Source of the DNA: Trichoplax adhaerens
Taxonomy: Eukaryota; Animalia; Placozoa
Direction of reading: 5' to 3'
Assembly (NCBI RefSeq): GCF_000150275.1
Contig: NW_002060955.1
Coordinates: 1,804,126-1,868,125 of the forward strand
Length of the DNA: 64,000 nucleotides
Shown: positions 8,706 through 35,460 of the stretch, one piece after another
Layout of the letters: every line of letters begins with the position of its first letter
Position numbering within the stretch: position 1 is the stretch's first letter
Position numbers and translations under genes: made by a program
The notes under the pieces: model-generated
Told to the model about the DNA's origin: nothing
Seen by the model: the letters and a program-made list of their open reading frames with translations, nothing else
Databases searched by the model: none

Positions 8706-9816
8706 TCAAAATCTAGTGAATAGTTGGTTTTGTTGATCATGTAGATTCATAAGCTTTTTCTTCATAATTGCTGGCTTAGATTGGACTCGATTTCTTGATC
8801 TCCTAAATGAGTTTCCTAAACGGGCAGCCGGACGAATAAATAATCCTTTAATTACGGCTGCATTTGTAAAGGTATATAGGAATGGATTAAGGGCTGAATT
8901 AACAGGCAATGCAAAAATACCAACAAATTGTAATGTAACAACATCAACACCGTCGCTGCTAAAGATAGCATAACTGTTAACTACATAATAAGGTACCCAA
9001 CTAATTAAATCGGTTAACAGTATGACCGATAGACGCCATGCGAGTGATTTGTTTTCCTTAGTAGGTGATCTTCCGGCTGCTTTACGGGTATTTTGGGCTG
9101 AGATAAACATTCCAATATAAAGTGAAGAAGTAATTATCCAAGCAATAATAGTCGTGGTTATATAGGATATCATCCAGATGCGATATAGAGGGTGCTCATA
9201 ATTGCTTGGCATGCACATGCTATTATAGGTATATAATCGCTCAGGACCAGGTTTATCGATACTGAATAGTGCTGGCACAATTGCAAATGCAAAGCCTATT
9301 AGCCATGCCATACCAGTGATCATTTGAGCTGTATACCTGCTCAATTTTTTTCCTTTAATCCCATAAACGATAGCGATAAATCTATCGATACTGATAATTA
9401 CCATTAGAAACACAGATACAATACTTGATGTAGTCACAAAAACACAGGATGCTACACATAGACCACTTCGTAGCCAATTTTCAGATTGTAGACCGTATTG
9501 ACCTTGGCCGCTATAAATTAAATTAGCGGTCGCAATTATGAATAAATATATAGACATGATAAAATCGGATAGTGCTAGATTATTGATTAAGAATATGTGA
9601 ACTTTCTTTTTAGTCTTTTGTCTAAGAAATTGATTTCGTGCAATAACCATAATGTTGCCAAAAAAGGCCAGAGAACCAATAACCCATACAAAAGTTTGTA
9701 ATGAAACATGAGCAAGGAGATGTTGACACGATGATAAAGTATCAGATATCATCGATGGCTTACACGTTGTAATTTTAGCAGGTATAAAGCAGCAAAAGTA
9801 AGGACGATTTGTTAGC
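8706..9816 (-). CDS. Terminal exon of LGR-A: hinge + 7TM domain
   Basis: YFCC..TCKPSMISDTLSSCQHLL hinge, GN (TM1), NLALSDFIMSIYL (TM2), ISIDRF (TM3), LTDLISWVP (TM6), NSALNPFLY (TM7). Acceptor CAATAG precedes 9816. Confidence 0.95.
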
Positions 9817-12800
9817 CTATTGAGACATATCGTAGTAAAGAGGATGGTACATTTTAAGTTCTGATGTCGATGCAAATGTACTATTTGAAAGTAGAATAGT
9901 TGGTTAGCTATTGTTATTTTGACTTACGTTTCTTCCAACTTAGATGGACCAAAGAAGGATTCTCGAGATATATGTGCTAAAGAATTCATTCGTAAATCTC
10001 TAAAAATTGCAGATAGTAAATGTCTTATCATTGGAAGATGCGGTAAAGATTACCTCGCGTAATGAAATAAAGGTATGGACATAATAGTGTTAGCAAAAAG
10101 TTACTTCCTGAACCAATATAATATACGAATCGGATATTTATAAAATATCAGAATACTGTACATTATAAAGGTCACTAATATGGTACAGCTTTTGAATTAT
10201 TTCAAAGTTAGTCCAGTATATGAACGGCTTTGCATGATGTATGTGCAAGTTAAGTCTCAATTTTTACAAAACAAAGCGTAGTAGATAAAATTATCAGTGA
10301 AAAATATAGAGTATTAAAAGTAATATAATTTGTTCATTGATTGTGTTCAACATCAGTGAATATTCAGTATAACAATCTTCTTCACCTAATAATCAAAGCT
10401 AAAATTGTTTGCTTGCTCATACCGTGATGAGAATGCTACTACCTGTTCATAACAACGTCGTTTTATAGTTATAGCACAAAAAATATTAAGTAAAAGGAGC
10501 AATGGTAGTAGTACTAAAATGGTGCCATTCTGTCTTTGTTGAACTTACAATTTTTGCAGGCTTGATAGTCCTTTAAAGCATCTCTTATCGATCCTGTCAA
10601 TCTTGTTTCCGCTAGCATCACTTTAATCAATTTACGATTTGATAATTTTTAGTCAATAATCTTTGTTTTTACTACTACCAACAAAAATTAACCTAAATTT
10701 CTAAAATGATTATTAAATACCCACATTTCGATTATATTGAGAAACTGTCCAGCAAAATCTAGATTTGGGCCACATATTATCTTGATTCGATTATTGGAAA
10801 TATTGCTGATTCAGAGAGATAAAGGTATTAGATCCATGCTTCTTAATATACTCTGTCAGTCTTAATATCGTGATACTATCGTTTTCTAGTTATGAAATAA
10901 ATCTACGAGGGCTACCGGTACTGCCTTCGGATTTCGAGGTTAAAAATCTAATCATGAGTATATATTTTGCATTACATACATTACATTACATACATTATAC
11001 TTACAGCTTTTTCAGCTTTTCAAATCTAACTAATTTTGTAACTTTAAATCCTGTTAGATTATTGTTTGCAAGACTCCTGCAATAAATATTCGGATATTAT
11101 AGCAAAAATTGCATATACGCTTATTTCTCTAAAAGCTCCTATCGCGTAAAATGAGAGCTTAATCATAAATCACCATATTTACACAAGTCACTTTAATAAC
11201 TGCAGTAAATAGGCCGCATATGAATTATGTAGAAATTACATATTATAATAGCCAAGAATGGCTTTGATGTCGCAGTAGACAGTCCGTGATTGCAACAACA
11301 GCTAATTAAATATAGCTGAACCAACTCTGTCAAAAAGTCTTATAACTGAGTGCCACTGTACTTAGTAAATAGTGTATTCTTCCTACGTAACTTACTACCA
11401 CAGACATTAGACTGTTCTAAACGGTTGTACTCTAGCTTTTGTTTCTTTAGTTTGATATAATGGTAGGAGTATCACTTTACATTAGGTAAACGAGGTTTGT
11501 AAGACTTAAGATCATAATAAGGATCTATTCTGATGTGTGACAATTGTCCACTATTCTTTAAATAGATGTATCTGATATTTTTTACATTAATTTGGAATAT
11601 GAGTAGTTAAATCATCTTACAATTCCATTAACACATTTGCATCATTGACAGAGATGTCGACCATATCAAATTCGCTTAAGTTGTTGTGATTTAATGATCT
11701 GTTAATTTAGAAATATTAAAATAATCCGCCGATAAATCTTTAGTAAGGTTTTGAAATACCATCATTATCTATATAGATCATGGCAATAAATTCCAATTCA
11801 AAGTTAGTAGTGGTAGCGAGCTAGAAAGGTAACTCTCACGTAATATTATGTAATGTTAAGTTAAGATACTTACATAATTCTGAGATCATCAAAATAAAAG
11901 GCTTTTCTTGGAATTTTCAAAATGTTACATTTATTTAATTGGCTGTAAAGGATTTAGATATTAAAGTTAGAACTGATAGCACCATATAAATATGTGATGA
12001 ATCATTCTATTTTTTATGACCTAAATTTATTTCGATACTTAAGAAAATTAGTACTTTAGTTCTTAATATTTAAAACTGAATGTTACGCACAATTTATGAC
12101 TTAAAATCTTTGATATGGAATCATAAGTACGCAAAATTTTAATTTTATGGTCTTTCAGCTATTACTCGTTCATAAAAATTTTCCAGTTTCTACGTATACA
12201 TGTATAACTTTCAAAATGCTTCAATCATTTTTGGTACTATTTATAACCCCTACTTAGCAACACTTTTGAAGACTAGATTTAATTAGCTAGGTGAGTTGAA
12301 ATAATAATTTGGTTTTCAATTTGCGTTTAAATTGATTTAATAGTGACTGTTTTTACATGTTAAGCTGTATACTTTTATGTCTAGCCTAACTTGATCCTAA
12401 TATTTAACTTTTCGATAATAACGACACATTCTGTAAACATTTCTAATTCCTGTAAGGCGCCTATTATTATCCTCGTATTATGCATCATAATAAACTCCTG
12501 ACATACCTATAAATGGAATGTCAGTAGTTATTTATGGTTCTGGTCAGATATAAACTGGATTTATTTTATTTCTCTGGCTCTATATTTATGACTTGAATCA
12601 ACTGTAAGTACATGAATGCTGAGTTTTTATTAATTATGTGTTTGTTACACATTCACTTTACCGGATTTAAATTTAGATGTTTTTGCATGTTAAGAGTAAT
12701 TTTGATCTAAAACTATTGTCAATATTATCATGGATGTAAAATTGTGATGTGAATTCGCTAATGGATTTGCATTAACGACTGTGATGCTTTTAGATGACGA

Positions 12801-15800
12801 TGATAAAGATATAACGTAATTACTATGAATGCAAAGTATAAAGTTTAAGATGGATATTGTCTCACTTTTAGTATAAGATGTTAGATTGCTAACTTCTTAA
12901 TTGGGCTAAATGTGCTAGCACTCATTATCAATTAATACATATGTGCCCTATAATAAGTATTATAAAACTAAGTCTATAGAAAAGTATGTTAATTGTATAA
13001 GCCTAAGAATTAATTGTTTTGTACCAGAAAGCTTGGCAAATGTATAAAAGAGGATTCATTTATTTAATATAACAGTGAGGTAATTGCAGTTGCTGAGTAG
13101 AGTACGCTATCATCGATAAAGATCTCATTAAGTAATCACCAAAAAGCTTTTTGTCTGTGACTTACTATTGCCTAAGATTATGCACTAGGTCAGTGAAGTT
13201 TGTGGCGCTTAGTAGTAGGGATACTGTACCATAAAAACTAACGGTAGTGAAATAGGGAGTTTTTTAAATGTCGCAAACGCGGTTGTGATGATGTTGTAAT
13301 TTCGATCGTTTGATTTAATTACTACTATAAAGTACTAGTGACATTGAAAAAGTTCTTGGAAATATTGTCTAGAGATATATCTTGTACCGTTATTTTCTTG
13401 TCTAAGTGCTACCTAGAACTGCGTTGTATTTCTTAAAGCACAATAATACTATATAAAGAAGTACTTTAAACTTTGAAACATTACAAGAAACTGTATGAAG
13501 ATTGTACGGTCTAAAATATCAAAAATGATTATCTCGTTTATCTTAGCCAAGGATCAAATCCGCTTTGTATGAATTTCTAGTGAAGGATGTAGCATAGAGT
13601 GTAGTCTCATTTTGTATAATTTTATATGAAATTATAATAGCTTTAGAAATTGGCTAAATCTTGTTCGGATTATTTTAGTCACTTTCGACAGTTGGGAAAT
13701 AAAGTACTAGTACGACGGATCTTGTATAGATGTTTAATAAATCTTCAAAAATTAAAGACTATATATACGTGTATATATTATGGTCATCATTATTGTGAGA
13801 TAAGGTAGAGTTTTGATAATTTAGCAAATAAGGCAAATTTAATCGGATTGAAGTGAGCAAGATGAAAGAGTTACGAATTTCGATTTAAGATAGCTAACCT
13901 AATAAGAAGAGATAATTATCAAGGATTGGCGATCCTATCTAGTGCAAGTAGCGCTATGTTTTGATCATCTGATTACTATCATATTTCTTTATATTCCGAT
14001 TATATAAGATTCTATATTAGATATTTAGCCGATTCACAAACAGTTTTGTGTATCCGCAAATTATACTATGCAATATTGATTTCATCTGATCCCTGCGTTT
14101 CTTTAATTAATTTTAAATTTACACACATTGGCGTAGCTGCAGCTACTAAGAAATCTACATGTAAGATCGTTTACTAATAGCCTATAGTGCAAAGTGCATA
14201 TCTAGATTACAGTGCTTTATGGACCTTACTTTTTGCATATTCCATGTTAGTATTATTACTTAGCCATGTTTTTGTTATACGATATGAACATGTTAATAAT
14301 ACATTCTGTTATTTAATGATATTCTAACTATAATGTATAGCATTTCTTTATCTAACATCTTCTATTTCTGTTGTTATTTATGAGTTACAGATTCAATAAA
14401 TACCAGTCATTCTTGTTTTGAAAGTAACTCTAGTATTCAATAGTTCTGAACTCTCAAGTAGTTGATTCTTTTCGAACAAACTACGCTTCAACTTTTCTAT
14501 ATTTCATCTCATTTTACTTGACAGAGTTCATATATGCATAACATAGCCGAATAACCGAATAATCTAATTAACTAAGCATTCTAACAAATGCTAAAAGCAA
14601 GTTATCGTAAGAATATAGAGATATATCAGAGGAATATGCTATTATTTAATCTAATCTACTATTAAACTCTCATTCGATTTATTTAAATATAAAATTAATG
14701 ATTCTATCAACTATTTTCTGTATTTATGAATAAAGTACATAGCTGCATACTTATTCTCATACTGTCCAGTTGTTATTATTAGTCAGTGTTATTAACAAAT
14801 ACAGTGTAATAGAAACTAACCTTTTGCGGGATAGAGTAAAATATTCCTTATTTTGACTACTTACATGCCAGTTAGGAATGGCCCAACACGGTCGTATAAA
14901 TCTCTCAGGAAGGAATTTAATATTATTGGATTATCACTCACATCTCTATACGCTCAAAAATAAATACAGATACGATCGTTAACATTTTCCTGATGGTATA
15001 TCTTTTAAGTTATAAATATCTAATGAAAGCTCAGTAAAATAAACTGGTGATATCAAATGGAATATCGTCTAAATTATATATAGCTAATGATAAAAATTAG
15101 TAAATAAAACTGGCGATATCTTGTTTTTCAATTAATAACATTACAAATTTTAGATCCTTAGTAATTATATCATTGTTTTATGTACATACAGTTTTAAGTT
15201 TTTCATAGTCGGCATTCCGTTAATAATTCCAGCCCAATTATTCCCTGCTAATTTCCTATGAAAGTAATCGACAAGGCAAATCATTAAATTTGTATAAGCG
15301 TATCAATACTTATAGTTAGAGTTTACTTTGTAAAGAGATTTATATCATAAATAGGCTCTATAGTGGCTTGCTATCTAAGTAAATTAATAACGACCCTAAT
15401 CTGAAGTCAGATCACCAGCGTATTACTTCGTAAAACGTACAAGTCATTAATCAGCTTTAATTTTTCAAGCAAGTCTTTCTGCATATTTATTCCGTTTGTA
15501 ATCAAATTGGTATAGCTCATATCACTATCGAATAAATACAAAAGCAAATGGGTCACTTAATTCCAAATGCGTATCAAATAAATCATAACAAGTTATTTAT
15601 GGAGAGGTTCAATCAGTAACCTACATTTTGGTAACTTGATAGAATAACTGATCACAATTAGGATCAAACTTTTTGATATTATTATTTGCTAAAATTCTTA
15701 AATTAGCCAATTAAGCATAATAATTAGAGAGTAATATTTCCAGAAATAATTAGCTTTCAATTTAAATACTTAAGGGTGACCGTAGTTAGTAACAGTATCA

Positions 15801-18800
15801 TCAATAAAGAGAAATTGTTAAATGAATTTATTATTACTTACATAGATTTTAGTATTGCAGGCAATCCTGAGCAGTTCAAGTATTTGATGTTGTTTCTCGC
15901 TAAATTGCTATAATAAAAGTAGACTTGAGAATTCTATAAGAATACGATTTCATAAATGATACGGTACAGATGTAAGATTTTTTACTCTAGGTTTGATACT
16001 ATAACATAAAAAGCTACGAAATAGTAATTATATTGAAAATTTAGACGAAGAATTTAAATATTCGCGTTCCCTGTTACAAGTACAAATCTTTAGATTTTAT
16101 TCGTCCTATTTTCACTTACAGCTTTTCAAGAAAAGTTAATCCCAGATTATCTTGATCAGACAGTGTTATAGCATTATTACTTAAATCTCTAAAAAAAGAA
16201 TTTTAGTATGCCTGAGCTTCTAGATCATTCATTTACTATATAGTAACTGAAATGGTTATTTATTTAGCTCACAGAATTCTTAAATTTTTGTAACGCGAAA
16301 ATAATTTGTTTCCCAGCATCGTAATGTAATTGTTGCTTAAATATCTGAAACAAAGTCACTTCAATTAATTTAGAAAGCTACACGCATAAAATGTACTACC
16401 ATTGTGATTACATACGTTTAGAATTGTATATAGACTAAATTTATGAATATTCCTAATTTGCACTTACAATTGGCTCAGATACGGCAGTTTCACTTTAAAA
16501 ATTTTGCCAACATTTCTAATATTATTGTAATTTAAGTTCCTTGTATACCGAAATATCATGAAGATATAAAATGATAAGGAATAACTGGGCTTAGCTACAA
16601 ATGAAGTAATACAATTTGTCTTACAATATCCGTATGTTGCTTAATCCTCCCAAAAAGGTATTTTGATGATCGGATATATGATTATGATGTAGATATCTGA
16701 ATCATATACAGACGTTATGAATTAATTTATCAGGTAATCATAAATATTTTACTACAGTTAGCAGTATATATTTCCCTGTGTTCTTACAAACTATTTAACA
16801 TCGTATTTTTAAAAACATTTTCTGGCAATGTTCCAATGTGGTTGTAACCAAGGTATCTGTTAAACATAAATGTAATTATACTGTACTTTAAAAGATATAT
16901 TTTTCTTTCATGCCATCCTCTCTGGATGAAAAGATTGTTCAGCACTATAAATTTGTTGATAGCTACTCGTATACTTTATAAATGAGTACAATTAATTTAT
17001 TAAATAATAAAATATTCTCAAGATTCATATTAACAATCGGCGCTTAGAAATATAATCATTGAATGTGACATAAATGACGATCATAAGACGTCTTGTGCAG
17101 TCAATCGAGTACAATTTTGTAACGGTAGTGAATCTACTGTGATGAATGATATCTTACTTAATTTAGACACGTACATGTATCACGATAAGATAGTTATCAA
17201 TTTGGATATGTGCATGAATTATTTTATGACTTAATTAATATAGCCGATACAAACCTGTTCCTAATACAGGCTAAATTACACTAAATATAGTATATGAATT
17301 GTCAATGGTAAATTCAATATAAATCCTGTTAATTATAAGCTAGTGAAAACATAAAGTTAATATATCGTAATATTACAAAGTCATTGGATTAGGCTAGGAA
17401 TAATTTAATGTATTCACTAAGTCTTATTGGTCGAAATATATCACACATCGTAAACCGATTTTATGGCTAGAATAGCTATTTTAATGATTGATTTAGAATA
17501 TTAAATTAGACTCGTATTTTCTAGAATAAAGATATAATTAGAAGATTCCGAAAGTGCATTTCTTAGTTATTGTTACTTATCTAGGGTAATCTAATTAGTT
17601 TAGATTAGGCAAGTTTGGTTAAGTAACACATTTATACTTTTACAAAGTTACTTACAATTCTTTAAGACTTCTTAAATCTTTAAAATCATCGGAGTCTATT
17701 GCTTCAATGCGATTATTTGCTACAGATCTAGGCATTTAAAATGACAATTAAATGCTTTAGCATTTGGTATTTGGCAGTATCAAGATAAATTAATTTTTCT
17801 TTATATTACCGAGTAGGTTATGGATTGCATTCAAAAGCATCGCAACATTAAAATCATTCTAACGAAGTACCACTTTACGGTATAAAGTTACTGAACCTCT
17901 GTTAAATGAGCACATTATCGTAAACCGTCAATAAAGCGACGGGAGTTTGCACTAGTGAATTCTAATTTAAACACCTTGCGAAGATTTATTGTTATAGGCA
18001 CATGCTCTTTATATGGTATTCTTAATGAAAAAGTATACTAACTAATCTTATTTTCGTAGACAAATATTTACACCATTATTTCTAACGCTATCATTTTATA
18101 CTTTTGCACTTATACTGATAAGCTGTACAAGTTAGCCTGGACTTACGATAGAAATAAAATACTAGCAAAATTCCCTTTTCAATATATGTCTTACGTGAAT
18201 ACAAATACGTCATTATAATCTATGATATACTATTCAAATTATACTTATTTAATCAAATTTGATAACAAGCTAGGCTAGGAAGTTTATAAGCTTACAAAGC
18301 AACAAGTTGAGATAGTGGTCTTATAAAATCTATCTTTCTTAGGTTGTTCTTACCCAAAAATCTGAAAAATCGAAACAAAAAATAAATTATCAGAAAGCTT
18401 AAAAAGCTTACAAAGGTAGCTTGCCAATGCTTTATCCAGAAATCAGCTTAAAATGAATCGCTCTTACGATTAAAATATTATGAAGTAAATGATTTAATCG
18501 AATTTTACATGCCAATTAATTTAAGTAATATTTCTGCTGATTAAACTTACAGTGAATGTAACCCTGACAATGGTTTTAGTGCGTCTGTCTTAATAGAGTT
18601 TAGATTATTGGAAGAAATATTTCTGCGGGATTTGAATAGGAATTAGTAACTTAGAATAAATTTTGAAATTATATCTATAATTAATTTATCAAATACTATT
18701 TGAATTAAGTCTATGGCAAAAGATAAGGACGATGCTCTGTCAACCTTATAACATTTTAATAATTCAGATATTAGAAATTTCCAAGTATCTGTTGCAGATT

Positions 18801-21800
18801 AAGCTAAATTATTTTAAATAAAATTACAGCAAGTGAATTGGCTTTCAATGACGTGAATTTGATTATTAAATGGTAACTTTGTCAATTGTAAATGGACAGT
18901 ATTGAATACAGTAATATAATATTAACATGTTAGCCGTAATTTGTGCCGTATCTTATTAGATACCCCAGTACTAGAGCTTATATTAGAGTAACACACATTA
19001 CTGTTACAGAATTACCGTAAATTTCTTTTAAAGTTGATTATTGTGTTTTACAATACTCTCCATCAAGAAAGTTCATTATCTGATAATTTACATCTTAGGT
19101 GCAAACACCGTTGTCATTAAACTTTTTAATATTTAAATTATAATTACGTCATAATAATTTCTATCATTAATTGTTATAACATGTTAATTACCGTATTACA
19201 TATCACTATGCATGCTTTAGGAGTAAGATAATTACAATTTTCATATATTGCCTGATGCCACATACAAACCAATAGATAAAATATTAACGTAATATCAATG
19301 TAGTTCTTTATTTGTTAGCATACCTAAAGATACCTTCTAGAAATTATCATATTAGATATCATGTCATCTTAGCGTCTTCAAAATAATTTCTCAACTAATA
19401 CAGTATAATTTAATGAAGAAGTTTCTGTTCTAGCAATGTATTCTAATAATTACAAATCATTCTCTCTATCTCCGTCCAACTAGAAACTATTGACACTATA
19501 TTACACTTGAATTTAAAATAACATAACATTAAGCACCTGAAAAGGAGGTATCAAATCTGGAGGTGATAACTCAACAAATATGCTCCTAGTACTACACTAG
19601 TTTAACCTGATCAAACTTTGATATTTACTAAAATCGAGTAAGAAATTATTAAGAATCAGCACGAAAGATTTTAATATGAACTTAGCAGTTAGACTTCCTA
19701 TATGGACATTTTATCTTAACATTAACAAGACTTTTGTGCTACTATTTAACATAATTGGAAAAATTTCCGTAAATATCAGCATAAGAATTAAGGTAAATAT
19801 GCTATCAGACTGTGAATATGCATAATAGCTATCAAACTGTTATGTACAAATGCTGGTAGCTATTTTATTTCCTCATATATTGTCACTTACAGTGGGGCTA
19901 GATAATTTAATGCAGAAAAATTGAGTGGATTTGATTGATGTAGCTTGTTATAAGATAAGTTACTGTTTCAAAGAAGATCTTCACTAAGGTCATATAGTCT
20001 TAAAGTGATTACTTCTTAAGAAATGCAGCAGTAATTAAAATTATTGCTTTAATTATAACTTGATGTTTTACAATGGTTACAATTGCAACTGAATCATGAT
20101 CATAAGCATTACAGGGTTCTGCAGTCTCCAAAGTCTAAGTTTTTTATTGTCGATAGGAAATTATTGGTTAAATCCCTACATTGAAAAAAGATATCGAAAG
20201 ATTGAGTAATCAGTAGATAGAAAAATTATTAAAAGATATGCTAGTGTATCAAAGTAAGTTTAAATAAGATTAAATGTTTCCTATAATACAAGTATGATTG
20301 TGAAAAGTGCTTGTTCCCATTTTCTTGTTAAATTACTGAGTGCAAATGTGGTTAGGGTTAAGGTTACACTATTTGCTCAATATCTTTCAATTTTTATTTG
20401 TATGGTATAGCATTTGAGCTGTGAAAGTGTCTACTTCAAGTATATAACGCCTATAAGACTTACAAAGTCTCTATTATAACTGGGTTACTTGCTCTGTTGC
20501 GATTTTCGTCCAGCTTCAATGGATATGATCTTGATAAACCCCTTCGTAAGTCAATAATAATCATAAATAATAAGCGTAGAAAAAAACTTTTCCAGTTGAA
20601 AAGTGTAAAATGTAATGTTATATCCTATTTAGGGTCTATATATATAATAGTTTAGTTATGGTTATTCACTTAAGAAGGCTTTTATGAGATTGAATTATAA
20701 GTGAGAAGTACGACATACAAAAAGTTCATCGATGCCGTATTGGGTAAATTGAATTCTCGAAAATTTCCAATAGGATTACCACTAAGCTGTCTAATAAAAT
20801 TATATTAGAAATATATTTAATTACTTTACTTATTTATCTCTTATTATAATCTTTGTTTATAATTGGTGAAAGTAAACAGCATATAATTATATCGTTAGGA
20901 ATCAGGCTATATAGTGAAGGAGGTAACAATGATAGTGTACTTACAGCAATTTTAGTTTGTTTAGTCCGAAAAAAGCTTTCCTATCAACATGTTTTATGTT
21001 ATTTGTTTGTAAACGTCTGGAATACACGTAAAACATATCAAAGATAAGCATTTAAATATTATATTATATAAATACACTGAAGATATGTAATTCCACCTTC
21101 AGCAACAATATACCGGACGAAGAAAAACTTCTTGAACTATTAACTGTAAATCATTATCACTATTTTTAATTATTGTTAGATACGATTTGATTAAGGTTAC
21201 AGTAAACTAAATGAGGGATTTCAAGCGAAAATCTTCTTAACTGCAATCTATATAATGCACCATACATTACATGATACGCATTCTGTAAAGCACACGGTAC
21301 AGCATGTAATTTTATTACTAATTAGTAATTCATGTTATCGTATAGCGTGTAGAGTAGAATGAATATTTACTTAACCTTAACTTATAAACAGTGACATTGG
21401 AAGCAACAGTTGTTAAAAATAAAGCCTAATTGTCTCTTTAATAATGTACTTTGCATGTGCTAGTAAAAAATGATTAAAATTAACGAATTCCGAATTTTAC
21501 CAGTTACAGTGATCTTCTACTTCTTTTGAGTTAGTTACAGACTACGATAATAAGCTATGCACATAACTGTTCCGGAAAATACATTCATTTTCTATTTTAT
21601 ATGTCTAACAAGATCGACTTGCAGTTTCATTAGATATTTTGACATCATATAATGATTGAAAGATGGATGAAGAACAAATTGTAGTTTCAAATTTTACTTA
21701 GGATTCGCAAAAATATTACAATATCTAGGCAAAGACCATGCCAGCTTACAAATTATGGAGATTTGAAAGGTACTCAAACTGATTGGGAGCTAAATTTTTG

Positions 21801-24800
21801 AGTTCATTTTCATTTATATTTCTAGCCAATATTAAGTATTGAAAACGAGCAATTATTAAAATGACAGTTAGACCAAATGTTATGATCTCATTAATAAAAG
21901 CAGTACTAGTGAACTTACAAGTCCTGAAGTCTGACTAACGGTTGCAAACTTTCTGAGCTCAAATCGGTTAATTTATTTCCTGCTAAATCTCTTATCGACA
22001 TAACATAAGAAACTATGCAATTAGTAGATTGATATTCACATGTTATGCGTAAATAGCTTAATAAATATGATGATTGTAATAGAGAATATATAATATGTTG
22101 ATGAATAATTGCATGTTCTTAAATATACTGGTACAAAGTCGGGAAAATTTTCTAATGTATTATTATACAGCATTTATATGTGAGTTATAATGGCCAGCTA
22201 AATAGCTACGAATAAGAAAGGACAGGTAAGTTATGATGTATGAATGATATTTTATCTTCTAAAAGTTTGGAGAAAATTCTAGGTTTGTTATGATTGTATA
22301 CTCACAGAATAGCAACTTTGTCTAGGTCCTTAAAAGCGGTAGCATCGATCTTAGAAATATTATTAAAGGGTAGTCTCCTAAAAATTTAATTTGATTAATC
22401 TTGATAGGTATTTCCTGAAAGCTTTAAATATGTAATAATTGATTCTAATAAATTGATTGGTATTAGGTTAATTTCCGTTGCTAACTTTTACTTTCAAAAT
22501 CTAAATCTTGTGACGCTTATATATAGATTAAATAATTACAGGGTTATAAGGCTTTTGAGGCCCTTGAACTGGTAGCTATCCAACGAAGTTAACTTGCCAT
22601 TAGTGATATTCCTATTCAATATTTAAAACATCAATTGTTATTTTAGAAGTAACTTCAAAAGATATGTCAGTATCTAACTAAGTGCACTTTGTTACCTAGC
22701 TATTAAAATATAAAAAATCTATTAAAACTTCTCTTTTTGAAGGTACGAATACGTTTAAGTATAAGGTCTCATTTAGATTTAAAATTCCAACTTTCTTTAA
22801 CAGAATTCGTCAGCACTACTGTTGGTTATTAACTGAGACTAATAGCGGTTTAAAAATATTTAACTTACAAAATTGTTGTCTTAACCGTCGATTTAAATAA
22901 TTCAGGAGGAAGATTCAATATGGGATTGTAATCCAAATTTCTAAAAAATATATAGTTAATTAGATGAATAATGCACTGGAAAAAAAAGATCATTTGCTAA
23001 TTTTGTATTCGCTGAGGTAACGAGTAGTTTATTATCTTAAACTAGCCATGAAAATCTATAAGAAACTAGTTCGTATGGAAATTTTTAATTAAATTCTTAT
23101 TTATTTTATGTTGATATCTGCAGTTCCAGCGACTTTGTACTATTTTCATACTTACATCAATTTAATTGCAGTCAATGGCTGGAATGATGTTGAGGCAATT
23201 AATTGGATATTATTATAATCTAAATGCCTTTATTATTCCGGTTAGAAATCGGATTTAGGAAATTTTGTTTTCAATTATTCAAGATAATTGAATTTGGGTT
23301 ATGTAATAGTAACTTATAATAGTGATCATTTGATTCTTACAGTTCCCGCAAGTTTGGAGCACATATAGTTTCAGGATAAATAGTTGTTAGATTATTACGA
23401 TCTAAGCTCCTAAAAATGAAAACCAGTGGTGTGTTATCATAAGCTTATAATCCAATTAAATGGCTGATATCTTATAGGAAAAATAGCTGCTAAGAGCCGA
23501 GATATTCACGGCTTACAGTATAATTAATTATACATTATTACTAGGTCTAAGCCAGTTTGAATTTCAACACTTTTCTCAGTAAAATATAGTTGGAGGGGTT
23601 CATCATATTAATACAAGGTCTTATCGCAGTATCTTTATACAACGCTTTATGTTTAGACAAATCATACCCCAAAAATCTAATGTAACTTTCTATGGATTAA
23701 TAGTGAAATTAATTTGTACATAGATAATCTAAAATGAAGTACATATAATTGATTACCGCTTACACTATTGTAATGTAACATAGTATTGTGATTGTAGACT
23801 GTTAGCCATGTAATCGTGCTCCCTAGCAATTAAGAATTTAAATTTTGATATAGTAACGTTACTTGGTAAATTTTTAATAAGACTTACAATACTTCTAGTT
23901 TCTTAAAGTCGCAAAATGTATTATTTTCTATGGCATGCAATTTATTTTGAGCAAGGTCACTATATAAAAGAAAAGAAGATATGCGAACGAAATTGATATT
24001 AAGGATTTATGACTACATTAACACCATTTATATTATTTGCAATGTAATTATATCCTAGTAGACGATAGGATATGACATTTAGTTTAGTCTTTTGCTTCAC
24101 ATTATTACTTGTATGTGTATATCATGTAAATAAACGCGCAAACAATTTAGCTTAAATAAAATGTCAGAAATATATACGAGCATTACAGATTTTATGCAAT
24201 AAATTCTCTCAGTTTGCTTACAAATCTATCAAATTTGTTAAGCTGCTAACAGAATCACGTTGTAAATTCTCCAAATTGTTGCCTGCAATGAAACTAAAGC
24301 ATAAATAATCAATACTCCGATTACTATTATCCAAAATAAGTTATTTGTCGTGATACTGTAATTTACGGTAAAAATAAAGTCAGATCAATAATTAAATTCG
24401 AAAGTGTATCGTATCAATTGAATTTAGTATTAAATTTGTAGTTGTTGACGTATAATGATTACCAAATGGATATTAAATATGAAGATTGCATTAGTAAATA
24501 TATTTAAATATGATTTTACTGTAATCCATTATTATAAATGTATCGTGCATTAGATTCGTATTACATGAAATTAGTATCAGAGCTTATACTTTAAAGCAAC
24601 TGTCATCTAGATTTAGTTAAATAAATGATCAACTATCTTCAATTAAAAATTGCTATTAACCAGCATAACTACAACTGTTATGTCAGCAATATACAATGTG
24701 TTGAAATACTCGTAGACATTCCAAATCTTTGTACAGTTTGTTTGAAATCTTACGTACATCCTCCTAAGCCGGTTTGAGCCACTAAAAGCATTGCTTTCAA

Positions 24801-27800
24801 TTGTTTCAATTTCATTATTCGAAAGGCATCTAATTTGAAATAGTTACCGTACTTCATTATGACTGATATTCAAAGTAGCATTCATTTCTATAGAATAATA
24901 TCAAAAATTCTTAGCTGGTAAGTTATATGTAGGCTAGAAAAATTAAACATTTGAACTTCTATTTAAAATGATAATTAAAAATTATCATCGTTACTACATA
25001 CAAGGTCTCCAGGTTATGAAGATCGATGAAATAGTTCGATCTTATGATTGATAGCTTGTTTTTGGAAAGCGATCTGCATAAATATAACAAATTTAATCAA
25101 TGTATGAATACCTGGCTGCCATAATACTTAAATAGGCCGATCAAAATTGCAACTTTTTCTTCTATATTCACAAAGTGGAGCATAGATTGATTAAATTCTA
25201 CTTCAGTAATCTATAGCCTTTCAACCTCAATAAGATACTATAGATCTTTATATGGTATATTACCTGCATACGATACGCTCCACTAATTTTCTAAACATGT
25301 TTGTTTGTTAAGATCGTAATGCAATCGATTTATACTTTCTTTTTCAACTGTTATTATTACTACTACTTACATTACTTACATTATTCACATGATGGCTTAC
25401 ACTGTAATATGTCTTTATTAATAACTATCAACCGCGAATTATAGCAAACAATTACGGATCTATTTCCTGCTAGAGTATCTATGCGAATCCAGATGATAGT
25501 CATGAAATAGGGTTATTTAGATTAATTGAACTCTCTATCATAAAAGTGAAATACAAACTATAGTGATATATCGTAGGCAATTTATACATTATTCTGCTTT
25601 ATCAGACATACAACAAGTTCAATCCAGCAATTGGCTTAAAGGCTCCATCATCGATAGATAAGATTTCATTAGATTCCATAGTTCTGTCAATAAAATGAAA
25701 AAGATAGATAAGGATAAATTTGTATAATATAAATTCTTAGTCGTCAGATTGAATTATTATTTGTAGAACCAAAATGCAATTGCAGAAGTATCCAATTATT
25801 TACTGTAAATAAAATGGTTGAATGATAGTTTCAGTTCTATCAAACGAAAGTTCTAGCCACATCAACTAGAGATTAGTCTGTAATGTTTTCATAATTAATT
25901 AATGGTTTAATGATATTCAATCATGAGATTAGCAGTAATTTATTTGGCTTTATATCTTCGAAAATCTTATCTGAAATTGGCAAGTGTGGTAGATATAATC
26001 TTTATCATTAAATTAATAAATCGAATGTATTATTAAAAGACATTAATCATCTACGGGGTATTGTAAAATACATGACAAAAATGAAATGACATTATAATAT
26101 AAATCATTAGGAAATTTTTCTTACACTTCCGTTAGTTTGGAGAGGCATGCAAAGCTACCATTTGAAACTTTAGATAAATTGTTATCATTGAGGTCTCTAG
26201 AGAAAACAGTTCAAAATTACAATTTTTTCTAGCTTCAGAGATAAACTTGAAATTACGTGTCAGAATATTATTTAAAGTACGTATGTACAAACCAATTAAC
26301 GGTTTTACGCCGCCAATGTTATACATGAAGTAAAATTGCTGACATATAAACATATACTTGTAAATGATTACTATAAAACTGCTATGCAGTATTATATATA
26401 CATCACAAGAAGTAAATTGATTAAAAGAAACATTAAGAAAAGGTGAAATTTTAAGGGGTATAATAAGAACTAATATCTAGAAACAGTTCATGTTTCATTT
26501 AATATGCATGCGATAGTACCATTATCTTGAAGTATGAAAGACAATTAAGAATTTTTTATGATTGAGTTAATTAAAATTATTACGCGATTCAATGCGTTAG
26601 GTTGATGACCATCAACGATAATACAATATTTTACCAATAAGTTTCAGAAAAAAATAATAAATTTTGAGCTTTACTAAACTTACAGTAACCACAGATTGGG
26701 CATTGAACAGAATGACCCGCTTTCGATAGAATTGATATCATTATTGTGTAAACTCCTAATAATTAGAAATGCTACGTCAAATTCACGTACTTTACATCAT
26801 ATAAAGAAATACTAAATGTGCTATTTAATTAACATCGAATTTATAGCTAAAGTAGTACAGTACAGAATGGAATAATACATATCATAACTTAATTTAAGTA
26901 AGAAGGTATCCATAGTTTTATCTACAAATAACCGGAATGAAGCAAAGCATTTTCGTTATCGTAGTTTGTATATTATAATAAAGAATAAGTCTGATAGATA
27001 CTGCTCGATGAAAGGTAAGAAAAAGCCTAAGTTAATAGATACATATGCCTTAACTATCGATAATAAGGTTAAGGTAACAGAGAATTTTGCTTTATCAGAT
27101 ACTTGAGTATTTGACGATATACATAATAAGCACTATTATTTCATTTTATCTAATAGTTTACAAGTTTTTCAAGTTAGAAAGACAAGCAAAGGTGTAACGT
27201 TCAATTTTCTGAATTTTGTTCTGGAAAAGCCGTCTATAGTTAAGTCAAAAAAAGAACTTAGTGAGTATTAATCGTTTGATTTTTATGTATATCGCGTACG
27301 GATGAGGCAGTTCTTATGAAGATAGATACGTACAGATTCGAAACACTTAATAACGTACAAAACGAATTCGGTTCGATGTAAGTAATTGAATTTTGTTCTA
27401 TGTCTCTAAAATATCGAAATAGTTGAGGTTAGCACTGATCTGCCCAAATTGAAATTTTTACGGCTAATTCCAATATGGTTATTGGTTGATTTTGTGAATT
27501 GCGAGGAACCATGTAATAGTTCACGTAGCCGCTAGCAAGTCATTATGATATTTTTTGAAGGACATGCTTTACATGTTCATTAATGGCATCCGAAGCTCAG
27601 TGAGTATTTACCGAATTGATTATATAATTTATTTTTGAAATTCAAATTCTTACAGAAGTTGCACTGATGATAAGCCAGTGAAGGCCCATATACCAATTGT
27701 TTTCAGCTGATTTCTTGCAAGATCACTAATTAAAGATGATGTTTAGCGAAAAATTTAGACCGTATAGTAAATTAAGAATTTAAATCATTTTCATTTCCAT

Positions 27801-30800
27801 GGAAAATTAGCTCTATGTAATGAGAGAGTGTAATATTGTATTCTAATTTTATGATATATTTAGTACTGTCTACGTAGTTATTGTGTTCAACATGTGATAG
27901 ATATTCCGTTAGAGGCTTAAGTATTTGAGATGTTAATACGGAAGTGTGTAGCAAGTAAGGTGCTAAGATTGTTGACGCGGAAAAGTTTATAAGTGAATAG
28001 TTTAGCACGGTAAAATAGTTCTTTCTCGTTAGAAGTCCTCAGTTGATTGATTACGTTATATTTTGGTAAACGAGATTTTGTTCAATAAATCTTAATTTTC
28101 TAAAGTCTTGAAGATTCTTTATCTATCAAGCTCACACTCTGCTAATTAAAAAGTAGCGGTGGCTAATTATAGTTATAAAAGTAAATTTGATAAACTACAT
28201 TGGTAGATTGTGCGATAAGCTTTTGATACTATAAATATAATACTACACTATTACTGTCAATATAAAAGAATTCTGTAAAAGAATTCTATAAAATTTCAAT
28301 CTTACAGTGTACGAAGTTTGGTCAAGTTACGGAATGAATTTGGCTCAATTTCTTCGATAGCATTAGCTTCAAGAAATCTAAAATATTAAATAATGGTATT
28401 GTTATTTACTAAGTACTTGTATAAGCTCATTCAAGTTGAAATAGATTTTTTCGTTGCTAATGGTCAGAATATTTCGGTATATCAATGATCGCAGCTATTC
28501 AGGATGAGTATGAAAATATCACTGCGCTTTTTCTTCTATATTAACTTATTTTATACTTACAAGCCAATTAATGATATCAAACAATCCAAACTATCATTTT
28601 TAATCACTTTCAAACGATTGCCTTTCAAATTTCTAAATAGTAAATTTCATATGTGCCAAAAAGAAAAATATTACTTCTAATCTTAGATAGTTTCATAATT
28701 AACTTACAATGTCTGTATTGACTCAATCGTAATTAAAGAAATTTATTAATTGTTCTTTAGCTACGATGTATGATAACTCTGATGATTAACTTATTTTTAC
28801 ATATTAATACGTACAGACGAGTAAGTGACTGCAAACCACATAAGGAATTGGGTTCAATAACCGAAATGGCATTATGCCTAATTCGCCTGAGATGTTGATG
28901 AAAGAATGATAGTTCTAGATTAGTTGGTGAGAACACTGCCATTGCAATGTATTACATTAAAAATGAAATAAATATAATAGCTACTGATTGTGCCACATTG
29001 AATATTTGATTATAATTGTAAATCAGAAATAAGATTTTGAAATTAAAAAAAACACTACTTATACTGTACATTACAATGCGGTCTTAAAATGATTTACTGG
29101 GAATGAAATTCTACTGGATGATAGCAGCCAAAATTTAGAGCGAGCTAACGCACATAGATATATTATCAGATAGAATATCATCTATCGCAGACTTACAAAT
29201 ACTTCAAATTCGATAAACAACCGAAATTGTCTTTAGACAGGGTTTTAATTCGATTATTATCCAAAAATCTAGTCAAAATTCAGATAAGATTTAAAAGTGG
29301 GATCAAAATGCTAATATATGCTAATACAGCTAATGCAATTTCCCTCCGATGATACTGTTAACAGAGTATGTCCGTGTATTGCACTTACAAGTACTGCAGA
29401 TTTTGCAATGTACATAATGCTTTTGATTGGATGTCGATTAGAGCGTTCGAATCAAGTTTCCTACAAAAATTGGATATACAGATATTAACCATTACGTTTA
29501 CTAGCTAACGCTACAATTGTAATGATCATGTATAGTCAAGGAAGCAAATAAGGCAGCTAGGACTTGGATTTTTAATGTAGTTATTGGAAAATGATTTATG
29601 ACTTTTAGTGAAATTTCACTATGGGGCACAGAGGATTATGTAGCAACCGCTTGAAAAATAATTTCAAAGGGTTCTTTTTTAACTTTTGCAGTGTAATCTT
29701 AAATTATTACTATCAATATTATAAGAATACATAGATAGCAAAACGAATCATTTCACCGAGAATGCATTACTAGGACAATATAAGCCTTATACTGTATAAA
29801 AGGAGTGTAAGACTTCAAATTTGAGCTTAGGTGCGGGGTTATTCTGATTTGAAAGGCATAACTTACAGTGATTTTAGGTTGGTTAAGCAATTAAATGATC
29901 CATTTGTAATGAATTGCAGTCGATTAGCTTCTAAAGACCTTAAAAATGTATAAAACAGTATGCTGGATACATCTCGACATTCTTTAAGTAATACGAGTAT
30001 ACTCGTAGACAAAATAAATTTTGAAAACTTACAAATTGGCTAGCCGTGGCAAGCCACAGAATGCATCTGGTTCAATGGTCTCAATCAAGCTGCTGGTAAT
30101 ATTCCTATATTAAGTAATCATAGATGTTGGGTATCATTATCTAGAGATACTATTAACAACTGCTTTAAAGGTTCTTATTGCTTTTCACATGCATAGCGGA
30201 CAGAAAATTTAGCAGTAGTAAGAGTTATTGTAAAATTAACTATTAACTGCTAGTCCATTATTGATTGCAAGGACGACTTACGAGCGTCGTTCACTCTTGT
30301 AATGATTACAAATTACAAAGTTGTAGCATACACAGTAGATTATTTAATGTTTACTCGGTGCAATTAACAATTTTTTATGTAGAATTAAGAAGTACAAATT
30401 AGCAAATGTAAACATCTGTGCTTACTATACATTACATAATATTTATACAAAATTATAGTATTAATCTTTGCAGCATACAGCAACTGTAGGTAATTAGTCA
30501 CCGTTGCTAAGTAATTTGTAACGATAACAAGTTTTAAACATGAAAACGTAAAAAGCAAACTGTAACAATGGTAAGTTTATGGCTTCCAAATTCTCATTAG
30601 ATGAATGGAATTAACCCACTACATTATATGTCATAACATCACAATTACCGTCAGGAAAAATAGAATTAGATTATATTAATGTATAGTGATATTAGATATC
30701 TTGCGTTAAGATACTATAATATTTGATATCTTGTGTTAAAATATTGCGATAATTCATATTTTGCGTTAAGGTTTAGTGATAATAGATAGTTCGTCTTAAG

Positions 30801-32889
30801 ATATTGTCATATTGGATATTGTAGATATTTTAATACAATCTATTTGTAAGTTTTAAAAAGTATATCAGCATATTATAAACAGGCAAAAGGAGAAGTAAAC
30901 AAATTAATTCTCATCTACGTGTCTTGTATTACTGTGTTCTTGTAAACTTTGCTAAGGTAGACGATTAGGAATTATCTACAAATTATAATAGAGTTATTTG
31001 AGTTAAAGTGCCTAATGTTAAACTCATACTGATCGTGTAGAAAATGGCTATACATTATTGGCAGAACAGCAGTGAAAGTCTACATGGTAGAAGAAAATTT
31101 TTGTATTGCAATTGAGGTCGTGACTTCACGGTAGTCTGAAGGTAATGTCAGGTAATTTTTGATAGCCTTGTGTTGTGGAGTGACTTTTACTTACTATTTG
31201 CTTATCTTATTATCCTGACGTTGGTCAAGTTAGATTGGAAGACTTGGAGATTAAATAAAGGTAACTTATTTAGTAATTCTAGATTGTATGTCAGGGAATT
31301 ACGACAAGACAGATTACCCGATATAATCTCCCTCTCCCAAGGTAGTGGGAAATACTAAGAGTGTAATATGGCGCATGGCACTAGTATTATCTAAGTAAGC
31401 GCTCATTACTAATGCTTACATAAACTGACTGTAAATTAAGTGATTTTTCAATAAAGTTAAGGTTTAGTTTTATTCAGAAAGACCAGTAGTGCGACTGTTC
31501 CTCCTGCCGACTGGAGATTGTCAGTATCTAGAGTGGCACTGCAGGCTCGCGGTTGTAGTTTTCTGCAATAGCTTAACTTTCCTCACGTTACAAATTTAGA
31601 CTTACAGTGCATTGGTATTTATTTGTATTTAGTTGTAATAGCTGTCTATTCGTACAAATATTCATTGGTTTAAACTAGTATAGGATAATCAGCGAGGAAT
31701 TTTCCTATCTATAAATTCGTCATTTGAAGTATACATTATTTATTGCTCGAAAGCTTTTGATCCAGCTGGATAGTCAATAGTGAGTTCTGGAAATAATATT
31801 GCTCTATGTGGTAAGTTTATCAACTCAAATATAATAAAATCTCATCTTAGGAAGGCATACCATGTACCATCAGTATGTGATTACTAAATTATCCTCTCAT
31901 GAATTTTTAGGCCTTACAGCAGTAGGAATGCAATATTCTTGCTAGATTTTATTGCAGATTAGTGTAGTACAGTCATCTATTTGACCAGCTAAAGTCTAGT
32001 TAACTTGCTAGAAGGCGATCGGTGATATATATGGCATTGATTACTTCCAATAAAGTCATAAAATGCTACCGTATCTTTAAGTACGTAATAATGTTTTATA
32101 GAAGGCAGAATAAGCAAAATCCTCTAAAAATAAGATGAAAACAGTATAATAAGGTGAATACTTACAGGATGACTAGTTCTGGATAGTTTATAAAGCTTCT
32201 TGCTTTAATCTTTCTAATGCTGGTGTTGTTGATTATCCTATAAAATTAAAATTAAGCATCAGTTATCGTCTATAAATCAGTAGTGCAGTCATTTATCATA
32301 ACAATGTATTGAGACTATGATGAGATATAATTGCGACAAGAAATACTAAAGTGAATATAAATTCTTCGTTTAATAGTACCCCTGGCTTTAATTACAGATA
32401 TTTTGGTAGGTATTCTACTGTGACTATTACTAGATAATTTAAGTTTGAGTGCTAAATGATATCGTTTACTGCCTAGTACGCTTCGATTATTGTGCAATAA
32501 CCGTGCGTTATCAATAGAAGCGATCTTAAACACAAGTATATAAATAACAAACATTGAAATTTTCTATTGTTACAATGTCTACTAACAGTGATTGCACATT
32601 TTCAATGCCAGTGAAGTTAATGTTGGGCAATTCGATTAAGTCACTGCTAGAACAGTTTATAAACGAAATGTTGCACTTGCAGATACTTGGACAACCTTTG
32701 CTGATTTCTGTTAGAGGTAGTAGCAATATATCACTTTATATCATGAAGAAATTAATAAGGGAAGGCTGGCTCTTTGATATTAACGTTAACTGCACCTGCA
32801 ATTCCACCGCTATAAGCTGTTAGAAGCCAAATTATTGCTATAAAATGATTGTAAAGGATCCAATGCTCTAAATTGCGCTTGCTTTTCAT
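8706..32889 (-). CDS. LGR-A: giant leucine-rich-repeat GPCR (signal peptide, LRRNT, 49 single-repeat exons, RXFP/GRL101-like 7TM), ~1,620 aa, 52 exons
   Basis: Exons: 32889-32796 (signal peptide), 32707-32587 (GCPSICKCN..NCS LRRNT), then AG/GT-bounded phase-2 exons 32237-32166, 30104-30033, 29938-29867, 29460-29389, 29268-29197, 28886-28815, 28632-28561, 28377-28306, 27725-27654, 27405-27334, 27233-27162, 26755-26684, 26196-26125, 25683-25612, 25073-25002, 24829-24758, 24293-24222, 23959-23888, 23409-23341, 23227-23156, 22940-22869, 22611-22540, 22377-22306, 21990-21919, 21821-21750, 21016-20945, 20790-20719, 20541-20464, 20175-20113, 19962-19891, 18622-18551, 18361-18296, 17727-17656, 16856-16788, 16696-16625, 16539-16468, 16344-16273, 16188-16120, 15907-15842, 15696-15625, 15524-15441, 15255-15190, 14945-14865, 11942-11874, 11698-11621, 11076-11005, 10805-10725, 10620-10549, 9999-9928, and the 7TM exon 9816-8706. 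Nearly all read xLxxNxIxxIxxxxFxxLxxLxxL; all are stop-free and multiples of 3 in length. Confidence 0.9.
23769..23811 (+). repeat. Short terminal fragment of the family-C LTR in an LGR-A intron
   Basis: TGTAATGTAACATAGTATTGTGATTGTAGACTGTTAGCCATGT matches the first ~43 bp of the elements at 56864 and 61888. Confidence 0.7.
30682..30830. repeat. Degenerate ~30-bp minisatellite, ~5 copies, intronic
   Basis: Unit approx. TATAGTGATATTAGATATCTTGCGTTAAGA repeated with substitutions. Confidence 0.7.
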
Positions 32890-34824: not shown

Positions 34825-35460
34825 ATTAAAATGGAGATAAAAACAACTCCTAATGGAATTTGTAATAGTCCAAATTCTAGATTTCTAGAAATTCATTTTC
34901 AATCTGACTGAACAACTGTAGAATAATTCAAGAAATAGATTAAATCAGTCTAAATGAGTCTTATTGTCAAAGATAATGTAATATAACTGTAAGAATCTGA
35001 TAATAAAATTAGACATTAACTACAGTTTATAGATTTACCGGCTTTATTGATTTAGGCTTAAAAGCAACTCTTATTGACTTATGGTTGTATTGCAGTAAAA
35101 TAAAATTGAATAAGAAACTGGGAATGACCTTCTATGAATTGTTGACTGAATTTTTAAAATGAAGACAAAAAACAGCTACTTATGGAATATGTGACAGTCC
35201 ATTTCTTACAATTTTAGAAATTCATTTTCAATCCTACGAAACAATTGTGGTATAATTGAAGACATAGATTAAATCCGTCCAAATCAGCCTTTCAAAGACA
35301 ATATAATTGACAACTGTTAGAACCAGATGATAAAATGAGGCATTAATTGCAATTTACGGATTAAGCGGCTGAATTAAATTAGGCGTAAAAATCAACTGTT
35401 AATAACTAATGTTTGTATTGTAGAAAACTAAAGATTGTACCATAAATTGGAAATGAAATG
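34825..35460. repeat. Two-copy degenerate tandem duplication, ~330-bp unit
   Basis: TTAAAATG.AGA.AAAAACA..T..TA.GGAAT.TGT.A.AGTCC...TAGAAATTCATTTTCAATC...ATAGATTAAATC.GTC.AAAT occurs at ~34825 and again at ~35155. Confidence 0.75.

Follow-up and report, generated by a model that had tools for sequence, protein, structure and literature searches.

A giant leucine-rich repeat receptor gene of Trichoplax adhaerens with 49 repeat-encoding mini-exons

Structure and transcription of the gene

The placozoan Trichoplax adhaerens carries a giant leucine-rich repeat (LRR) receptor gene, here called gene A. It lies in the stretch of DNA analysed in this work (the window), 64,000 nt of contig NW_002060955.1 (assembly GCF_000150275.1, positions 1,804,126 to 1,868,125 of the forward strand). 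The assembly comprises 105.6 Mb in 1,414 contigs; the window is AT-rich (G+C ~30%), and coordinates without a contig prefix are window positions. Gene A, which occupies C1402:1812831-1837014, is on the minus strand, with its ATG at 32889 and its stop codon at 8706-8708. It is an intact, transcribed gene of 52 exons, and it encodes an LRR-containing G protein-coupled receptor (LGR) in which 49 repeats stand before a seven-transmembrane (7TM) domain. It adds a member of record length to a known kind of receptor, the placozoan-specific LGRs, and belongs to a subfamily of at least five genes sharing the 49-exon plan.

The gene model was rebuilt independently. The 52 joined exons give a coding sequence of 4,857 nt and a protein of 1,618 residues with no internal stop. 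The initial annotation had predicted 52 exons and ~1,620 residues; both figures hold, and its ends were exact. All introns are GT..AG on the gene strand, their donors are mostly GTAAGT and their median length is 212 nt. The LRRNT exon (32707-32587) and the 7TM exon (9816-8706) enclose 49 mini-exons of 63-84 nt; 36 are exactly 72 nt long and all are of phase 1-1. This in-frame series had also been proposed before, and splice sites, reading frame and a strand control agree with it. The control came from a scan of 8.7-32.9 kb for open, phase-1, AG..GT-flanked pieces with an LRR start motif, which found ~45 LRR exons on the minus strand and 2 chance matches on the plus strand. Gaps in the scan were filled by reading the 5' end and by conservation with a neighbouring paralog, gene B. 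The acceptor (after CTAACAG) and the GTTAGT donor of exon 2 were picked by reading frame, and the motif at 32693-32625 in this exon is the only LRRNT-like motif in the window. A candidate exon at 32451-32380 was dropped, being in the wrong phase and not conserved in gene B. The parts of gene A, all on the minus strand, are as follows.

Exon 1, 32889-32796: start codon and hydrophobic signal peptide; 31 codons and 1 base, donor CAG/GTGCAG, in frame with exon 2
Exon 2, 32707-32587: LRRNT cap, C-P-x-x-C-x-C ... C ... L-x-x-L-P; weak Pfam LRRNT match (E 0.0039)
Exons 3-29, 32237-20719: 27 regular LRR mini-exons (26 of 72 nt, one of 69 nt), matched exon for exon in paralogs B-E
Exons 30-31, 20541-20113: irregular units of 26 and 21 residues, kept in all close paralogs
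Exons 32-42, 19962-15625: 11 LRR mini-exons of 66-72 nt
Exons 43-45, 15524-14865: irregular LRR-like units of 84, 66 and 81 nt, kept in C, D and E; 44-45 missing from B
Largest intron, 14864-11943: 2,922 nt, between exons 45 and 46
Exons 46-51, 11942-9928: six membrane-proximal LRR mini-exons of 69-81 nt
Exon 52, 9816-8706: Cys-rich hinge, 7TM domain, C-tail and stop codon; the preceding intron (9817-9927) is seen in RNA

The single mini-exons have the following coordinates (minus strand).

Exons 3-7: 32237-32166, 30104-30033, 29938-29867, 29460-29389, 29268-29197
Exons 8-12: 28886-28815, 28632-28561, 28377-28306, 27725-27654, 27405-27334
Exons 13-17: 27233-27162, 26755-26684, 26196-26125, 25683-25612, 25073-25002
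Exons 18-22: 24829-24758, 24293-24222, 23959-23888, 23409-23341, 23227-23156
Exons 23-27: 22940-22869, 22611-22540, 22377-22306, 21990-21919, 21821-21750
Exons 28-32: 21016-20945, 20790-20719, 20541-20464, 20175-20113, 19962-19891
Exons 33-37: 18622-18551, 18361-18296, 17727-17656, 16856-16788, 16696-16625
Exons 38-42: 16539-16468, 16344-16273, 16188-16120, 15907-15842, 15696-15625
Exons 43-47: 15524-15441, 15255-15190, 14945-14865, 11942-11874, 11698-11621
Exons 48-51: 11076-11005, 10805-10725, 10620-10549, 9999-9928

The 7TM exon was found, whole or in part, in 19 public RNA runs. Exon joints were checked with contigs from four runs of four studies (X1, X2, X4, X11), mapped on 9400-15399 only. 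All eight introns inside this stretch are present as RNA joints, which link exons 44-52; most of the joints occur in all four runs and two occur in three. Those among exons 46-51 are all found in X1, X2 and X4, while X11 shows the 3'-end joints down to exon 48. A loose contig end at 15255 continues into the end of exon 43 (four runs), indicating an exon 43/44 joint beyond the mapped stretch, and a 1,518-nt contig of X2 extends from exon 45 upstream past that stretch. The joint 14945 to 15190 (four runs) resets exon 45 to 14945-14865 (81 nt). Its acceptor is 9 nt upstream of that of a 72-nt guess (14936), and the reset exon opens with the LRR-like D-V-S-D-N-P-I. Read depth on exons is ~10 times that on introns in the mapped stretch.

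The 2,922-nt intron had been suspected of hiding a break between two genes. Its joint (11942 to 14865; CT..AC, which reads GT..AG in gene orientation) is found in each of the four runs, and gene A is a single gene. No extra exon joint within this intron was seen in the RNA contigs of the four runs. The intron is mostly covered by contigs at a depth of 5-27, compared with 40-350 on exons, which fits pre-mRNA or DNA carry-over. No exon-skipping isoform was seen among the contig joints of exons 43-52, where contigs drop rare variants.

Protein architecture and class placement

LGRs are recognised by an LRR ectodomain and a rhodopsin-family 7TM on one polypeptide, and by Cys-rich caps. The protein of gene A consists of a signal peptide, an LRRNT cap, 49 repeats (residues 73-1249), a hinge of ~30 residues with four Cys, the 7TM and a basic C-tail. 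RNA joins exons 43-52 and the 52-exon frame is open, which places ectodomain and 7TM on one polypeptide. The LRRNT stands before the repeats and the four-Cys hinge before the first transmembrane helix (TM1). The 7TM exon matches Pfam 7tm_1 (PF00001) over the full profile (1-260) with an E-value of 2.4e-30, and the 7TM carries the motifs DRF, SWVP and NPFLY. There are 23 N-x-S/T sequons in the ectodomain.

The repeats comprise 46 regular and 3 irregular units, and 36 of the 49 are exactly 24 residues long. Their consensus is that of the classical 24-residue LRR: over 34 regular repeats, Asn occupies N9 in 32, Leu or Ile occupies L6 in 31 and Phe occupies F19 in 24. When Pfam was run exon by exon, LRR_8 was the top match in all seven regular exons scanned (E 8e-4 to 0.04); irregular exons 30, 43 and 45 gave no Pfam LRR match in this single-exon scan. 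The irregular exons 30-31 may mark a possible break in the solenoid. With 49 typical repeats, a planar array should not be possible, and the solenoid may, as proposed initially, exceed one superhelical turn. The predicted fold of P0161, a Trichoplax sp. H2 model 59% identical to residues 598-1606 of gene A, has a strand every 24 residues and seven helices (mean predicted local distance difference test score 73.6). A low-confidence stretch of P0161 (90-213) reflects errors in that mis-spliced public model and is no reliable guide to a solenoid break.

In exons 4-15 (30104-26125, minus strand), Cys shifts between positions 16 and 17 from one repeat to the next, and these cysteines are conserved in the paralogs. 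The variable positions of these exons have a similarity of 0.20 at lag 2, against 0.09 at lag 1 and 0.07 at lag 3. The pattern is consistent with a super-unit of two repeats, possibly with disulfides between repeats. The period-2 signal within the protein is weak and lies in exons 3-16. No two repeats of the protein exceed 50% identity, and repeats are closer to their counterparts in paralogs, which rules out a recent tandem expansion.

The three classical types of LGR are called A, B and C. Type C (RXFP1/RXFP2, Lymnaea GRL101) has LDLa modules and about 10 LRRs. RXFP1 and RXFP2 need LDLa, which acts there as a tethered agonist. The initial annotation had described gene A as free of LDLa, and this is correct: a six-frame search of the window found no LDLa motif, and the flanking DNA of paralogs C, D and E has none either. 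The LDLa hidden Markov model (HMM; PF00057) has 116 matches genome-wide. Those on the contig of gene A are at 737-750 kb, over 1 Mb from the gene, where they adjoin another 7TM that is 30% identical to that of gene A. LDLa exon clusters stand beside an LGR-type 7TM at three loci, located by HMM and 7TM matches.

C1402:733050-750220: LDLa exon cluster beside an LGR-type 7TM
C1410:6906417-6919913: LDLa exon cluster beside an LGR-type 7TM
C1407:2284047-2305223: LDLa exon cluster beside an LGR-type 7TM

These three loci fit the three type C LGRs reported for Trichoplax and probably represent them.

The 7TM was compared with solved structures at E<=1e-10. The best match of gene A is RXFP1 (7tmw; 125.8 bits), with hinge and second extracellular loop (ECL2) aligned, followed by TSHR (108.6) and FSHR (96); TSHR, FSHR and LHCGR together span 95-109 bits, and no LGR4 chain matches at this threshold. 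A Trichoplax type C gene scores 165 bits with RXFP1, 103 with TSHR/FSHR and 55 with LGR4. Two Trichoplax type A genes score 117-121 bits with RXFP1, 279-292 with TSHR/FSHR/LHCGR and about 140 with LGR4. The alignment of gene A with RXFP1 covers the hinge (C-K-P, D-x-L-S-S, L-L-A) and ECL2 (Y-x-x-N-x-x-C-x-P). A juxtamembrane motif, aromatic-x-C-C ... C-x-P ... (F/L)-S-S-C-x-x-L-(L/M), is common to the giant genes and to other LGR-like genes of placozoans. It also occurs in the three Trichoplax LGRs linked to LDLa and in seven LGRs of bilaterians that bear LDLa or resemble RXFP. The relaxin/GRL101-like hinge noted earlier is thus real, as the motif recurs both in Trichoplax LDLa LGRs and in bilaterian GRL101-like proteins. 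The type A hinge differs from it. The nearest non-placozoan relatives in databases are LDLa+LRR+7TM proteins named relaxin receptor-like or GRL101-like, and the names of relatives include 'relaxin receptor 2' and 'GRL101-like' (Trichoplax sp. H2).

A maximum likelihood tree of the 7TM was built with IQ-TREE from 40 rows, without a type B sequence; its base is unresolved and its outgroups are long branches. Gene A and four paralogs (B-E, described below) form one clade with 99/100 support, while a fifth and more distant paralog, gene F, joins other placozoan genes. A canonical clade with 100/100 support unites type A with the LDLa-bearing type C LGRs, both Trichoplax and bilaterian, and it excludes A-F. 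The assignment of gene A to the RXFP/GRL101 type therefore stands as a similarity and fails as a placement. In its hinge, ECL2 and 7TM gene A resembles type C, yet it falls outside the canonical clade.

Gene A can thus be compared with each known system. It shares with type C, including the three Trichoplax LDLa LGRs, the hinge and ECL2 motifs. It differs in having no LDLa, 49 LRRs instead of about 10, a 7TM only 30-33% identical to that of Trichoplax type C, and a separate position in the tree. It has neither the hinge nor the high TSHR/FSHR/LHCGR similarity of type A. Type B (LGR4/5/6, bursicon receptor) also has an LRRNT cap, and its LRR array exceeds those of types A and C in length, but this array has about 17 LRRs and no LGR4 chain reaches E<=1e-10 with the 7TM of gene A. 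The proposal that the architecture lies outside classes A, B and C is upheld. Like gene A, Toll-like and other long-solenoid LRR receptors have many 24-residue 'typical' LRRs in a row behind an N-terminal cap, and they are rich in glycosylation sites. Divergence focused on part of the concave face is a further point in common. Unlike these receptors, gene A has a 7TM G protein-coupled receptor (GPCR) output in place of a single transmembrane segment and TIR, and roughly twice as many repeats. It is a natural case of an RXFP-like hinge and 7TM without LDLa and so bears on how type C receptors are activated.

Many-LRR LGRs of Trichoplax have been described before. A re-annotation (PMC9545775; Koch, Hauser and Grimmelikhuijzen, 2022), which the 2020 PhD thesis of Koch underlies, lists 46 LGRs: 2 of type A, none of type B, 3 of type C and 41 Trichoplax-specific. 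The last (Tadh-LGR6 to -46) fall outside types A-C and have "unusually high" LRR numbers, the example being Tadh-LGR15 with 34 LRRs. Gene A agrees with this set in species, in its order of LRRNT, many LRRs, hinge and rhodopsin 7TM, in its position outside A/B/C and in belonging to a lineage-specific expansion. It differs from Tadh-LGR15 in having 49 LRRs. The same paper calls the hinge of the placozoan-specific LGRs 'own specific', whereas the hinge motif found here is clearly common with type C. Since 41 such receptors are already published, gene A opens no new class. The initial annotation had implied novelty, to be given up if LGRs of this size were already described as a class; that has largely proved to be the case. 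Gene A may or may not be among the 46 listed LGRs, as Supplementary Table 2 gives CoGe TriadITZ ids only. Its significance rests on the fixed 49-exon plan, the localised divergence between paralogs and the combination of an RXFP-like hinge with the absence of LDLa.

No model with about 49 repeats was found in print or in protein collections, where the 7TM search covers proteins of 203-646 residues. A loose motif count over the 150 best representatives showed no comparable LRR number outside placozoans; up to 26 repeats have been reported in a sponge LGR (Roch and Sherwood). A placozoan immunity paper, a fibre-cell paper and a 2025 placozoan GPCR preprint do not treat many-LRR LGRs. The public model of gene A is a 293-residue 7TM fragment, and those of its paralogs have 362-599 residues. 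Relatives in Trichoplax sp. H2 reach 1,020-1,270 residues; a search via one long relative (P0003) gave H2 models of 894-1062 residues, none near 1,600. Model P0161 departs from genes A-E at residues 133-160 and 185-220: mini-exons 27 and 31 are skipped, and intron-like sequence without counterpart in these genes is included. Public gene models thus badly under-call genes built of 72-nt mini-exons, and because they are fragmentary or skip exons, the published LRR counts of the placozoan expansion are probably too low.

Paralogs, divergence along the solenoid and possible function

In a search of its own genome at E<=1e-10, the 7TM exon of gene A has at least 99 matches; the closest are 65-68% identical. 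The mini-exons of four fetched loci (C-F) and of gene B were matched to those of gene A by dynamic programming.

Gene B, 36599-59310, plus strand: 47 LRR mini-exons matched; intact 7TM open reading frame (ORF); head-to-head with gene A
Gene C, C1402:1890100-1912251: 48 mini-exons matched; a 50-N gap at the expected exon 3
Gene D, C1391:41239-69568: 49 of 49 mini-exons matched one-to-one
Gene E, C1410:2910911-2930783: 49 of 49 mini-exons matched one-to-one
Gene F, C1399: at least 37 mini-exons matched; more distant

At least four paralogs keep the 49-exon plan one-to-one, a finding reported here for the first time. An LRRNT exon lies directly upstream of exon 3 also in C, D and E, and the proposed N-terminus of signal peptide and LRRNT is borne out. 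Exons match their counterparts, while introns have diverged. Over the repeats, gene A is 60-63% identical to B-E in amino acids, with a ratio of non-synonymous to synonymous substitution rates (dN/dS) of 0.18-0.24 and a dS near 1. Together with the low identity of repeats within the protein, these values argue that the 49-repeat plan is old, fixed in number and under purifying selection. An LGR ectodomain can thus be extended to 49 repeats and be kept one-to-one through several old duplications.

Divergence along the solenoid was compared among A, C, D and E over 34 regular repeats, with each position assigned to the core, the concave face or the convex face. Core positions are 83% identical among paralogs; the exposed ones are 55% (concave) and 53% (convex) identical. 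Identity varies along the array.

Exons 4-12: concave identity 0.71, convex 0.66
Exons 13-25 (27233-22306, minus strand): concave identity 0.30, convex 0.49
Exons 26-51: concave identity 0.67, convex 0.47

Concave residues diverge among paralogs only in exons 13-25, which is also new here. The difference between concave and convex identity in this segment is -0.20 (confidence interval -0.27 to -0.13), and none of 5000 permutations gave a 12-repeat window as extreme. Genes B and C are a young pair (dS 0.09); they differ by 21 non-synonymous and 4 synonymous changes at concave sites of exons 13-25, and by 0 and 5 at those of exons 4-12. The segment boundaries were set after the data had been viewed, so the result is a lead and not proof. 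Exons 13-25 can be regarded as a candidate specificity patch and offer a concrete place to seek ligand specificity.

The reading judged probable, by a little, is that the mid-solenoid concave face binds a large putative ligand. Such an extracellular ligand would dock at roughly exons 13-25, since only here do the paralogs differ in their concave residues. Microbial surfaces, matrix or neighbouring cells, suggested as ligands in the initial annotation, are candidates. Conserved concave faces mark the N-terminal repeats and the membrane-proximal half, which would form a common scaffold or transmission module. The signal would pass through the RXFP1-like hinge and ECL2 to the 7TM and on to a G protein, and activation would proceed without the LDLa tethered agonist used by RXFP1 and RXFP2. 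In the work behind structure 7tmw, RXFP1 reportedly uses ECL2 and ectodomain autoinhibition.

Several points weigh against this reading. The concave and convex positions come from a generic 24-residue LRR template and not from a structure, and the segment boundaries are post hoc. The numbers of changes in the B/C pair are low, and B itself may be decaying. Support for exons 1-42 comes from splice sites, the reading frame and conservation in paralogs, as RNA covers exons 43-52, and the contig data are compatible with minor isoforms that skip symmetric exons. The activation motifs are unusual (DRF instead of E/DRY, SWVP instead of CWxP).

A classical hormone receptor is possible but rather doubtful. 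A small secreted hormone, either an insulin/relaxin-like peptide or a cystine-knot protein, would then bind a few repeats, and the others would be spacer or scaffold. The hinge, ECL2 and 7TM are closest to RXFP1 among solved structures, relatives carry the names 'relaxin receptor 2' and 'GRL101-like', and the membrane-proximal concave face is conserved among paralogs, all of which would suit such a receptor. The whole expansion is also treated as candidate hormone receptors in the literature (PMC9545775). However, gene A lies outside the canonical type A and C clade and lacks the LDLa that RXFP1/2 need. Purifying selection has held 49 repeats one-to-one across old duplicates, which would be needless for a mere spacer, and paralog-specific change is concentrated in the middle of the array and not near the membrane.

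The remaining alternatives give the solenoid a different role or none. In adhesion or self-recognition it would contact matrix or neighbouring cells by homo- or heterophilic binding, with the 7TM mainly an anchor or mechanosensor. The very long, heavily glycosylatable ectodomain (23 sequons) is in keeping with this, and chaoptin is one example of a many-LRR protein with an adhesive function. Among paralogs, however, the 7TM micro-switch motifs and the C-tail keep 65-68% identity, which favours signalling over mere anchoring and leaves the adhesive role improbable. It is harder still to credit that the exon chain is a computational artefact or the pseudogene remnant of a tandem array, although the neighbouring copy B has lost its head and two exons and public gene models of the family are fragmentary. 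The 52 exons are in frame without a stop, RNA from four studies joins exons 43-52 as predicted, dN/dS is about 0.2 and the opposite strand yields only two chance motif matches.

A bolder version of the preferred ligand-binding reading, which we consider unlikely as it stands, would make the five-gene subfamily a set of germline-encoded recognition receptors. A fixed scaffold would carry a concave patch of ~12 repeats that diversifies between paralogs, directed at large ligands of non-self or environmental origin (bacteria, algal prey, other placozoans) and coupled directly to G-protein signalling. Placozoans have no canonical Toll-like receptors (PMC6321704). If true, this would be direct G-protein-coupled recognition in an animal without Toll-like receptors.

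Genomic neighbourhood

Neither a signal-peptide exon nor an LRRNT exon of gene B is present in the window, and the absence of its exons 44-45 removes 147 nt in frame. Gene B and C1402:1890100-1911721 (gene C, on the opposite strand) share ~93% identity, introns included. This suggests that a segment of ~23 kb was recently duplicated in inverted orientation, or possibly that the assembly contains a duplicate. A 457-nt inverted repeat (35061-35517 and 63542-63998, 99% complementary) flanks gene B on both sides; candidate explanations are mobile element ends, a duplication edge or an assembly artefact. A repeated element of ~560 nt, probably mobile, occurs at 49450-50011, 56864-57391, 61888-62440 and C1402:1913476-1914028. 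Its copies are 87-95% identical and sit in gene B introns, downstream of gene B and near gene C.

More LRR mini-exons are found just past gene C (C1402:1886381-1888994, minus strand), beside a 17-kb N run, which suggests another LGR copy or fragment in the cluster. Downstream of the 3' end of gene A, a 169-residue ORF (5783-6292, plus strand) resembles the N-terminal half (TM1-TM4) of another rhodopsin-type GPCR. A 122-nt tandem repeat of two copies (89% matches) is present at 3429-3667.

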